A stretch of 64,000 nucleotides of DNA from Oikopleura dioica (lineage: Eukaryota; Animalia; Chordata). The notes under the pieces are model-generated. The model was given only the letters and a program-made list of their open reading frames with translations. It was not told the DNA's origin and searched no databases. The translations under genes were made by a program, and so were the position numbers. Positions 15,084 to 19,526 of the stretch are shown one piece after another (position 1 is the first letter of the stretch; every line of letters starts with the position of its first letter). The stretch is from the NCBI GenBank assembly GCA_907165135.1, contig OU015569.1:7626001-7690000 (forward strand), given 5' to 3'.

Positions 15084-15916
15084 TGGAAGACGAATGATCA
15101 AAGAAATCTAAATCGAGAAACTTAAAATCATCTTTTATCGAGGAGCAGAGAATGAATTGTGGCAGCTTGAATTTTTGAAGAATTTATTTTTAGTTTTTAC
15201 GAAAGATTTCTGAGGAACAGGAATGAGAGATCGGCTGAACTTAGGAGAAGAGTTGAGTAATAAAGCATAAACTTGAAATTAAAGGCGAAAGTTGAGAGAA
15301 CTGAGATACAATAATTTTGAAAGTGAAGAAACTGTTTTCGTGATAGGCATTCAAAATTCATCTTTTTCTTGGATGTTGCGTAGGTAAAGGTAGTTTTCAA
15401 GCTAAAATAAATAAGTGAAATGTTCGCAGGTTATACCGCTAGTTCATGATTCAACCAAATAATTACTCTTCTCAATCAAGAACTCTCGGTACTCATGCAG
15501 TTAGCGCTAACTTATCACCAAGCGTGTAGCATCAATTTTAAGCGAATAACATGTAATTTAGTCACCATTTTATTTTACGAGGATAAATAGAAATTGTTTA
15601 GAGACGTAGAATAAAGGTTATAAATTTGCGGTAATTAAAGCAAAAACGTGATTTTACCAGATTTGGGTAACTCTGGCGACATGCGCGCCGTTTTTATTTG
15701 AATTGTTGAGAGCTAAAAGAAAAAATGGTGAGATCCATGAAAAACAGTGGCTACGCTATCTACCCCACACTATTTATAAAACTGTGATTCGACTTTATTC
15801 TTTTAAAAATTGGAACACTTTCGAATACGAAGACTATTTTCTAATCAAAGAAGGCCGTCTGGCAGACTGCCATCGAATCAGGAACAGCAAATAAATGTTT
15901 CAATGATAAAACTGGG

Positions 15917-18900
15917 TTAGTGCCGCTCTAGGACACTTCATGTGCATATCAGCAAGTGATATAAACAGTGAATGTTGAGACACCCGCTAACACAGAGTTT
16001 ACTTCTTACGCTCGAATACCTCATCTATGCTGGGTCGGTTTTGACTTTCTGCAAGGTGCTTTGCGAGGTCTTCTTGGACTTCCTTGCATTGTCGAGTTTT
16101 CATATTTAGATCGAGGTCGAGACAGGTCACTTTTTCTTCTAGCTCTGAGATGCGCGCCTCCTAAGATAGTGTTTTATATATGATCGACTCGTGGGAACTT
16201 ACAAGTTGTTCTTTCTCGAGGTCCTTTTCGCGAAGCTTCCTGCCGTATTCGTCGTCGATGGTTGCGATACGCTCGCTTAGTTCTGAGGTCTCAGTGTTGT
16301 ACTTTTGAAGCGACTTTTCCATTTCATCAATATTTACACCTTAATTGCATTGCTTGAGAAACATATTTTTAGTTCTTGTCGAAACCTTTTTCAATAGTTT
16401 GCGTCGCTATGGTTGTCTTTTCTGAGGCTAAATAGGAAATAGAGAGTTCCAGCTCTGCATTTTTAGACTTCTCGGTAGTCAATTCGCCCTTCAGAGTTTC
16501 TACACGACCAGCCAAAAGTTCCACCTCTCGAATGAGCGCTTCGCCAGTTGAAGGCGAGTGCTGCGTGTGGAACTCAGATAATTCTTTTACACGATTGCGG
16601 TAGACATCATTCTCATCTCTTAAACGGCAGCACTAAAGCAAAAGTATGATTAAAACTGCTCCGCTCAGCCCCTAATTACCTCTTCTTCTGTGCGACATTT
16701 TTCTTCGCTGATAATGCGAATCTTAGCCAGGGTGGCTATTTTGGACAAAATTTTGGGGTCTGGCCATCCAATTTCCATCCAATAAATTTTGAGCCGGAAC
16801 TATCCATCCAAAATCCAATCCAACCCAATTATTACCCAATTACCCAAAAATCCCCAATTCCAATTAGATCCAATTGGATTTCCAATTTTTCCAAGGCTTT
16901 TATCTCTTTGAAAAGAAGGGAAACAGTAAGTTTTTATCCAAAAGGAGGGTCAACATAGCCAAAACAATGATTTTTTATCCGAAATTTCTCATTTTCATTA
17001 TGAAAATGACCCTTCTTTGCATAGTTTAGCGATATATTTTTTATTGGATCCAATTCCCCAATTTCCCCCAATTGCCCAATTTTCCCCAACAAAATCCGGT
17101 ACCCTGGCCATCCAAATTCCATCCAAACCTTATTGGATTGGATCCAATCCAATTCCAACTAACCCCCAAATCCAAAATAGCCACCCTGATCTTAGCTTCG
17201 AACTCTATTTTCATTTCTATTTTTTGTTCTTCGCTACGTTCAAGTTGACTTTAAAATGGTTCAATTCGAAGTCCAAGCAGAATATGGGTTACCTTTTGTA
17301 ACTGTCGACGAGGCTTTTGTTTACAGTGTCAGAAATAATTGGGTCGCCGAAGGAGTGCTGAGTAGTTGAGGAAAGTGGTTCGATTCCGGAGTGTAGTGAA
17401 ACTTTATCTGGCGACGTCTTCGATGAAGGTACCCGCGAGGAGCTATTCTTGTCTGACCCCTCAGACAAATTAGACATAGTTTCGAATTCCAAGCCGATCG
17501 CACTAAATTAAAGATGACACAAAGCTCGTGCTATCTCGTGATGGCTCAGCTGAAAGTCAATTACTCTCGCTGGAATATTCTAACTAGGGTTCGAAAGTAA
17601 CACCGAGAATTTTTAAAGTTGGCTTTGGGGATACCGTATGCGGCATACGCCATTCCATACGGATTGAAAAAAGAGCATTCTGGTTGACTTACCTTCGGAA
17701 GAGGATTTCGCCTCGCTTGTTGTTAGGCGATAAAGGCACGGCTATCGTTGGGTGAACGTTTTCCTCAAGCGCTTCGAGCTCAAGAAGCTCATCAGCAAAA
17801 GATTTTGGCTGATGAGCAGGTTCCGGGAACACAAGAGAGCGATTGCTGAAATTTAGGCGCGTTTGGAAATATGCTGCTAATAGGCTGAATCCCGAATACA
17901 CCACGAAATCACACAGTGAGCGCGGTTAAACTTTGGCGATGGATGTTTTGACAAACTCCAGCACCAAATTTTTAACACGAATAATTATATCATCAAATTA
18001 TGTCTTTTTGTTAAATCATTCACCCAGAGCTAACGAGTAGGGAGTTGAACAAGAACGCAGATTCCGGCGGAAGCTGCGGCTCAAGTTCAAGCTTCCAACA
18101 TTCGAGTCGTTTAGTTCCGCTACTCTACGAGTCCTAGAATCAAATGAGTTAGCTTCTTCTAGGAAGGCACCGCCGAGGACAACTGATACTGAGGGGTTTT
18201 CCCCGACCATGGCAACCACTAAATTGATCCAAACAATAAAATGGCGGAGTGGCTACCTTTTGTGCTTTTTGATGCGATTCTCTGACTTGGAAATGTTGAG
18301 TTGCTCTTCCAAGTCAGCGTTTCGATTCTCTAGCTCGCTTATAACACGCGCCATGACTTCTTGTTTTTCTTCGTACTCCTGAGTTCTTTGATCATCGTTG
18401 AGCGTCTCTGAAAGGCAGTTTAATACTGTTCGGTACGATTGAAATAACCGTCTTCGTCGTGACTCTCGTTGTGACGGAAGGAACGCCCGTTCGCTGTACT
18501 CTTTTCGCTTTCCGTGCCTATGCCACTAGAAAGCCACTTCTTCACTTTTTCGTCAGAAGAGTTTATCGGCGGGGTGACCACGGAATCGATAGGCGGCGAA
18601 GAACTGGATGGTCCGTAGACAAGAAGCTTCGCTGCCGTGTTAGGCCAGTTGATATCGAGGTCGCAGTTCTGGTTAACGGGAATAAATGCAAATTGAATAT
18701 TGTACAATGCATAAATGCATTCCACAACCTGGACGAGGCCAGGGTGGCGAATTAAGGCACCAGTGGTAAAGAAGTCGTCGATCGATTTTTTATCCCTATC
18801 GAAAGGGGTTGGTGAAGGATGCTCTTATAGCGCTACTCAGTGAGTAGTACTCACGTTATAATTGTTTGAAGGAGGTCTGCAAGACAATTTTGGCTGAGGT

Positions 18901-19312
18901 AGTAACGCAACAGGCCCCGTCCCCTGCCGAGGTCCGTTTGCAATGACTTTTTGAGGTTAATATATCGTAAGCCATCTATGAGCTGCTTGCTCTGCTTGGT
19001 CACTTGTCGGAGGAAACTAAAGTATTCAACAGCAGGCTTCTTGTTGAATATGCCGCCGACAGGTTTGAGTCCAAAGAGAAGAAGATACTCAAGCTTCGCA
19101 CAAAACACATGAATTGAGGGGCACTCATCTGTTAAAGGAATCTGTGAACTAGAAAGATGTGTCAAGACCGAGAAAATCGACCGAATTGACAGCATATTCG
19201 GATCTGTAGAATTACCTCCGCGAATACTGAATAAGCTGCGCCGCCGATTTCGAGATGTCCAGAAATAATCTAGGAACATTGCCAGGAAGTCCCGGGGTGA
19301 ATGATCTCCCAT
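15917..19312 (-). CDS. RUN-domain coiled-coil protein, FYCO1/RUFY-like, interrupted by a MITE in a coding exon
   Basis: RUN domain PLTDEC...KLEYLLLFGLK...DGLRYI...TDLGRGRGLLRYYLSQNCLADLLQ...LYNIQF...DLDINWP resembles FYCO1 and is followed by coiled-coil exons. The 3' end is approximate and no FYVE motif was seen. Confidence 0.75.
16728..17188. mobile_element. 461-bp hAT-type MITE
   Basis: TIR CAGGGTGGCTATTTTGGA / TCCAAAATAGCCACCCTG; 8-bp TSD ATCTTAGC at 16720-16727 and 17189-17196; internal ccatccaa/cccaatt subrepeats. Confidence 0.93.
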
Positions 19313-19526
19313 CTGTCATCGGCTCATTCTAAAATTCATCTTTCAGAGAAAACCCGGAGCAAAAAGGTACTTATTTTCTGTCAGAAAAGTGTTAAAATTG
19401 GCAGTTGTGTGCTCTCGAGAAAGGAATTATCAGTGAATAACAGCTACGCTCGCTTCAGACAACTAACAGTTGATTATGTTTACGCAGTTGTCTATAGAAT
19501 TTTGAAGAGGAATGAACTGCTTGGAA

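Follow-up and report, generated by a model that had tools for sequence, protein, structure and literature searches.

A young hAT-like transposable element in a coding exon of an X-linked Oikopleura dioica gene and its possible removal as a new intron

Results

The host gene

The locus described here lies in a stretch of 64,000 nucleotides of Oikopleura dioica DNA (contig OU015569.1 of assembly GCA_907165135.1, positions 7,626,001 to 7,690,000 of the forward strand; hereafter the window, with positions counted from its first letter), in which a non-autonomous hAT-like transposable element interrupts a coding exon of the gene g15508. In OKI2018_I69, the reference assembly of Okinawan O. dioica, obtained from a single male, this locus belongs to the X-specific region. 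The coding sequence (CDS) of g15508 occupies positions 15354..19319 of the minus strand, and its public model CAG5098261 (Oidioi.mRNA.OKI2018_I69.XSR.g15508.t3; isoform t3, 686 aa) aligns with the window over 13 exons and 12 GT-AG introns, at 100% identity. A preliminary description of this DNA had stated that the phases of the introns flanking the insertion are consistent, and the mapping of the model agrees with this.

In the g15508 protein, a RUN domain at the N-terminus (Pfam E=2.5e-13) precedes a coiled coil, and the closest solved structure is that of the FYCO1 RUN domain (7BQI). The gene was found to be conserved in every Oikopleura lineage sampled, with more distant relatives showing 41-50% identity. 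The element splits coding exon 8, in the coiled-coil part of the protein. When the element is retained, the reading frame of the exon runs into it and meets a first in-frame stop, the TAA at 17041..17043 (minus strand; 17043-17041 in the coding direction), in such a way that an open reading frame (ORF) of 57 aa results (17041-17214, from ...IEFEAKI); a TAA inside the element had also been pointed out in the preliminary description.

The element and its other copies

The inserted sequence spans 461 bp (16728..17188, minus strand). Its inverted ends, CAGGGTGGCTATTTTGGA on the 5' side in the coding orientation (17171..17188, minus strand) and TCCAAAATAGCCACCCTG on the 3' side (16728..16745, minus strand), are complementary at 18/18 nt, and a 17-mer of the inverted end occurs only at these two places in the 64-kb window, with 0.05 occurrences expected by chance. 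A perfect 8-bp direct repeat, GCTAAGAT, flanks the element on both sides. The upstream copy (17189..17196, minus strand) lies in the codons A-K-I, and the downstream copy (16720..16727, minus strand) contains the AG at 16723-16722 that has been both proposed and annotated as a splice acceptor. On the coding (minus) strand the layout is ...GAGTTCGAA GCTAAGAT/CAGGGTGGCTATTTTGGA ... TCCAAAATAGCCACCCTG/GCTAAGAT TCGCATT..., where slashes mark the limits of the element.

Two other copies, 89-96% identical and ending at the same bases, were found in ocean metagenomes. The first (L079:162-589, from Tara Oceans, PRJEB4352) shows 89% identity and a 33-nt deletion, and the second (L080:382-841) is 95.5% identical to the window element. 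Since CAGGG and CCCTG are the exact points at which homology with these two independent copies ends, the flanking 8-mers lie outside the element and correspond to its target duplication. The longest ORF of the element has 94 aa, and the element ORFs match only other copies of the element. No further copy, diverged ones included, was detected within the window, and an Rfam search with the element and its flanks gave no match. A scan of JGI metagenome contigs with the inverted-end 17-mer produced 71 single matches, none of them extending beyond ~26 nt by blastn, and these were rejected as element copies and considered chance matches.

Inverted ends of hAT elements have the consensus start YARNG, and their target sites the consensus nTnnnnAn. 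The ends of the window element start with CAGGG, fitting the former, and GCTAAGAT agrees with the latter in the A at position 7, with C instead of T at position 2, as seen at this single site. An 8-bp duplication together with CAGGG-type ends constitutes a hAT signature, and by these features the element is classified as a young, small, non-coding, hAT-like miniature inverted-repeat transposable element (MITE). Thus, the description of a 461-bp hAT-like MITE inside a coding exon is supported by the inverted ends, by the duplication and by the two additional copies. An assembly artefact was also considered and rejected in view of the perfect duplication, the identical boundaries of independent copies and the clean empty sites of relatives.

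The 8-mers flanking the metagenomic copies do not match each other (GAGGTGAC vs TCTTAGAG in L079, and ATAAAAAT vs ACTTTATC in L080), most likely reflecting chimeric metagenome assembly across a repeat. The L080 copy is located 10 nt upstream of an acceptor-like TTTTTATAG/, after which an open frame of 127 codons extends on the opposite strand. Probably, then, another gene has this copy, in opposite orientation, at the 3' end of one of its introns; a Pfam search with the ORF flanking the copy gave no match. The L079 copy follows a 23-codon open frame.

Empty sites in relatives

Orthologues of g15508 encode an uninterrupted ...IEFEAKIRIISEEKCRTEEE at the insertion site, and transcripts or models from three other lineages read ...IEFEAKIRIISEE... 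without a break. In the Bergen genome (L001) the alignments of the left and right flanks overlap by exactly 8 bp, with a single GCTAAGAT at L001:5056-5063, and GCTAAAAT is found once at the site in both sequences from a wild relative with ~90% DNA identity (L002 and L003). The empty allele that the preliminary description suggested to look for was, therefore, found in Bergen and in this close relative. The presence of empty sites in both indicates that the insertion is derived and that the Lys codon AAG providing the proposed acceptor AG is ancestral. Inverted ends and duplication are both perfect, as expected from a very young insertion, and the comparison places its occurrence in the Okinawa lineage, after the split from the closest relatives sampled.

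The two sequences from the wild relative, L002 (Logan SRR23998815, 2185 nt) and L003 (ENA ERZ27264890, 672 nt), are 88-92% identical to the window over exons and introns, with a proximity to Okinawa that is far greater than in the Bergen-type or P0008-type lineages. They are devoid of the MITE and also of the 47-nt intron described below, and a close relative of the Okinawa lineage, as yet unsampled, may be their source.

Splice sites and the public gene model

To generate the public annotation, AUGUSTUS was run with RNA-seq hints on introns and exons taken from the same culture, and this program accepts only in-frame canonical introns. In all three public isoforms, the donor GT at 17162..17163 (minus strand; GGG/GTTAGT, the slash marking the junction), located 25 nt into the element, is joined to the duplication-derived acceptor at 16722, in such a way that an intron of 442 nt (17163-16722) is removed and 27 nt remain, encoding a nine-residue insertion, RVAILDLGI. 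The preliminary description had combined the same acceptor with a different donor, the GT at 17183..17184 (minus strand; AGG/GTGGCT), which belongs to the inverted end. The arithmetic of that proposal is right, as splicing from 17184 to 16722 takes out 463 nt, leaves 6 nt and produces the join ...AAGATCAGG/ATTCGC..., which encodes ...AKIRIRIIS... in frame and with no stop. Its acceptor is also the one used by the public model, but its donor is not, since the three isoforms all start the intron at 17163.

The two donors were compared with a splice matrix obtained from 60 window introns harvested ab initio, a rough and noisy reference that serves only for ranking sites (a still noisier first set was discarded). 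GTTAGT is an ordinary donor for this gene, as A is found at +4 in 8/11 of the other introns and intron 5 starts with GTTAGC. By contrast, G at +4, as in GTGGCT, is present in 1/11 of the other introns of the gene and in ~7% of cases in the rough window-wide matrix, and the C at +5 is likewise poor for this genome. With this rough matrix GTTAGT ranked around the 63rd percentile and GTGGCT around the 3rd. The GT at element position 5 is found in all three known copies, being part of the inverted end, and in L080 the second donor, GTTAGT, is replaced by GCTAGT.

Exact excision of the inserted sequence was also considered. Among the nine registers enumerated, an AG acceptor appears only in an AT-AG combination (register 6 of the duplication), and none of them yields AG-AC, AG-AT or any of the G[ACG]-AG classes described in O. 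dioica. Scar-free excision was, therefore, rejected as the main route, given that AT-AG sites would be required.

In-frame removability of simulated insertions

The element was inserted in silico at all 3,942 combinations of position and orientation of the host CDS. Of these insertions, 27% could be removed in frame and stop-free by GT-AG splicing with a scar of at most 30 nt, and 14% by pairing the inverted-end GT with an AG of the duplication. The GTs at element positions 5 and 26 share register, in such a way that a duplication with AG at positions 5-6 or 2-3 leaves a scar that is a multiple of three. The preliminary description had put forward a general rule for the GT at position 5 and an AG at positions 5-6 of the duplication, and as arithmetic it holds, because 6 nt are always left whatever the codon phase. 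Only about 7-14% of exonic landings in g15508 would supply such an AG. As 14-27% of random insertions are also removable in frame, removability at one locus is weak evidence, and it would become informative only if exonic copies showed it in excess across the genome.

Gene dosage in the carrier male

Given the X-specific location of this locus and the single male used for the assembly, the element-bearing allele is the only g15508 copy of the carrier, and this male reached sequencing age with it. The preliminary description had considered that the insertion could be just a rare heterozygous null allele. For the sequenced male, a null sheltered by a second copy is ruled out by the hemizygosity of the locus.

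Other features of the gene

A neighbouring 47-nt GT-AG intron (16633..16679, minus strand), located 41 nt downstream of the insertion site, was found only in the Okinawa lineage, and constitutes a second lineage-specific intervening sequence of the same ancestral exon. It is missing in L001, L002 and L003, in which the corresponding sequence is contiguous (...GAAGAAGAG/TGCT...), and the proteins P0030 and P0031 read TEEEC unbroken. No obvious inverted ends or target duplication were detected at 16633-16679.

The Okinawa models diverge among themselves and from other lineages within positions 17693-18133 (minus strand). Model t1 omits the exon 18133-18035, and the exon 17845-17693 (NRSLVFPEP...TIA) is present in all the Okinawa models, while the transcripts P0008 and P0001 from other lineages lack the greater part of it, reading PYSLAVPLSP. 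These differences suggest conserved alternative splicing. No canonical donor for the short form of this stretch was found in the window.

Discussion

The scenario that we put forward, tentatively and as somewhat short of probable, is the removal of the element by the spliceosome through the AG of the target duplication, with the donor that leaves 27 nt as the favoured one. A young non-autonomous hAT-like transposon has inserted into the coiled-coil region encoded by exon 8 of the X-linked g15508 in the Okinawa lineage, and according to this scenario the ordinary, permissive O. dioica spliceosome of the carriers would remove it as a new intron of ~440-460 nt. The acceptor would be the AG of the Lys codon AAG, duplicated into the downstream target-site copy, and the donor would be a GT from the 5' end of the element. 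For the latter, GGG/GTTAGT at 17163 appears as the better candidate and would leave RVAILDLGI in the coiled coil, with AGG/GTGGCT at 17184 (+6 nt) as the weaker alternative. As both donors share register, in-frame removal would be possible for every copy whose target carries AG at duplication positions 5-6 or 2-3. This proposal is supported by a public, RNA-seq-hinted annotation that spans the element with a GT-AG intron in three isoforms, by the conservation of g15508, and by the fit of GTTAGT to the donors of the gene itself. It is also known that the spliceosome of O. dioica is permissive and that 76% of its introns are at new positions, unshared with other animals (PMC4122922).

Several points weigh against spliceosomal removal. 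A carrier transcript was looked for in protein searches around the junction, covering the 332-1057 aa and 67-212 aa classes, and none was found. These searches returned sequences of other lineages, all with an uninterrupted AKIRIIS, plus the three public Okinawa models, and an exact look-up of the 57-aa read-through ORF found nothing on record. Regarding the annotated intron, AUGUSTUS would place an in-frame GT-AG intron here even without read support, and the RNA-seq used for the hints comes from other animals of the culture, which may carry the empty allele. The shared acceptor at 16722, CCACCCTGGCTAAG/A, has a C-rich tract in place of the T-run that 10/11 of the other acceptors show, and its score falls at the bottom of the reference set. 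In addition, in the predicted fold of the pre-mRNA (minimum free energy -155.7 kcal/mol, z=-4.2), in which the inverted ends form a stem of ~20 bp closing a long hairpin, both candidate donors are base-paired, and the GT at 17184 lies inside the terminal stem. Finally, the matrix that ranks the donors is noisy, and in-frame removability arises by chance in 14-27% of the simulated insertions, so its weight as evidence is low.

These same observations bear on an alternative that we consider rather unlikely, although it deserves serious attention, which is that the insertion represents a tolerated loss-of-function, truncating allele. In this case the element would be retained in the mRNA, translation would stop at the TAA at 17043-17041 after ~50 element residues, and the C-terminal coiled coil would be lost; the gene would be dispensable in culture for hemizygous males, and the annotated intron would be a repair introduced by the gene predictor. 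The lack of any removal seen in RNA through the junction searches and the ORF look-up is consistent with a null allele, as are the weak acceptor, the paired donors and the restriction of AUGUSTUS to in-frame canonical introns; moreover, an insertion as young as this one may so far have escaped selection. However, g15508 is conserved in all the Oikopleura lineages sampled and in more distant relatives, and the carrier male reached sequencing age with this allele as its only copy, both facts arguing against this alternative.

A third possibility is the excision of the element from the mRNA by a process of the type of SOS splicing (Zhao et al., Nature 2025; PMC12779559). There, exonic DNA transposons are described to be cut from mRNA without participation of the spliceosome in C. 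elegans and in human cells, with pairing of the inverted ends being necessary and sufficient and intronic copies remaining unprocessed. The process needs AKAP17A, CAAP1 and the ligase RTCB, factors conserved from nematodes to humans, and its cuts are heterogeneous, mostly not GU-AG, and located in or near the inverted ends, with some products in frame (PMC12779559). As in those cases, an animal gene carries here, within a coding exon, a DNA transposon with ends able to pair; in SOS splicing the excision from RNA buffers gene function, leaving short indels. If it acted on g15508, several cuts in or near the inverted ends would be expected, mostly not at GU-AG, some of them giving in-frame products. 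Both structural preconditions are present at this locus, as the element is exonic and its ends are predicted to pair through the ~20-bp stem, and non-autonomous elements and unrelated transposon families are among those reported to be processed in PMC12779559. On the other hand, SOS splicing is known for Tc1, Tc3, Tc4 and hsMar2, and not for hAT-like elements or in tunicates, and the 18-nt ends of our element are shorter than those of the elements assayed there (54 nt in Tc1, the one length that we found stated). The products are also imprecise, mostly indels, and would be a poor basis for a stable new intron, and nothing specific at this locus calls for such a process, which makes it improbable in our opinion.

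A broader version of this idea, that we regard as a long shot, is that Oikopleura excises fresh exonic MITEs through pairing of their inverted ends, either by an SOS-like process or by a stem-assisted variant of spliceosomal removal. In this case, tolerance to such insertions could have been the entry route of its many lineage-specific, stem-closed, non-canonical introns.

The least probable of the options, and a very doubtful one, is removal exactly as first proposed (CAGG/GTGGCT at 17184 with GCTAAG/AT at 16722, taking out 463 nt and inserting two residues, I-R), for although the sites exist, the product is in frame and stop-free, the scar is the smallest canonical one and the GT is kept within the inverted end of the three known copies, this donor has a G at +4 and a C at +5 that are unfavourable in this genome, ranks near the 3rd percentile and is embedded in a perfect ~20-bp stem, and the public model prefers 17163.

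Splicing of hAT elements out of exons has a precedent in maize. Work by Wessler and colleagues from 1987 onward reportedly showed that exons of wx, adh1 and bz can lose an inserted Ds, a hAT element, by splicing, with donors in the element terminus and nearby acceptors, and multiple sites are said to have been identified by cDNA, with small in-frame or out-of-frame scars left. Both Ds and the element described here are non-autonomous hAT elements in an exon, but those of maize are mutant alleles of a plant rather than candidates for fixation, and were documented by cDNA, whereas our case stands at the level of sequence. PMC12779559 cites maize Ds among the earlier evidence that genes are not necessarily destroyed by the insertion of a transposon.

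The combination of a donor provided by the element with an acceptor provided by the duplication is a documented route for the so-called introners (PMC11282704, citing Huff et al. 2016). Like the introners of Micromonas and Aureococcus (Huff, Zilberman & Roy 2016; through PMC11282704), the element of g15508 is a short non-autonomous transposon with inverted ends and a target duplication, and in them also the 5' GT or GC belongs to the element and the duplicated target provides the 3' AG. The differences are, however, substantial, since introners number hundreds to thousands of demonstrably spliced copies, whereas here there are three known copies, one of them clearly exonic, whose splicing is putative; in addition, their duplication is of 3 bp, while that of our hAT-like element is of 8 bp, and the target preference of our element has no AG built into it. 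The term introner-like, first given to the element, agrees with the proposed geometry of a GT in the element and an AG in the duplication, candidate splice sites of poor to moderate strength, whereas membership in an introner family would be putative, with three copies known and only that of the window clearly exonic. The text of the introner survey PMC9860276 makes no mention of Oikopleura or tunicates.

Another larvacean, Fritillaria borealis, has MITE-derived introns (Henriet et al. 2019, through PMC11282704 and PMC13326754), which are lineage-specific and show inverted ends and target duplications. The spliceosome of this species is adapted to odd sites, and its introns are mostly AG-AC or AG-AT and scar-free (PMC11282704 and PMC13326754), unlike the plausible routes proposed here, which are GT-AG with a scar of 6 or 27 nt. 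For O. dioica itself, transposon insertion is already listed as a source of introns (Denoeud et al. 2010, through Table 1 of PMC3443670). Those cases belong to the same species complex and share the proposed source of new introns, but as presented there they correspond to the Bergen lineage, whereas the insertion in g15508 is Okinawa-specific, apparently very recent, and X-linked. This locus is a clean and cheap test case and not a new mechanism.

With respect to the preliminary description, the present analysis adds that the public gene model differs from the junction proposed, that removability is weakly informative, that the carrier male has only one copy of g15508, and that SOS splicing is a rival route. 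The origin of most Oikopleura introns is an old open question, and animals have so far been largely absent among the organisms with transposon-made introns. The concurrence of a young insertion, a conserved gene, hemizygosity in males and a known empty allele makes the first step of intron gain directly testable at this locus. If excision directed by pairing of the ends were true, this hemizygous X locus would allow a natural, genotype-able test of how intron birth begins in a chordate.

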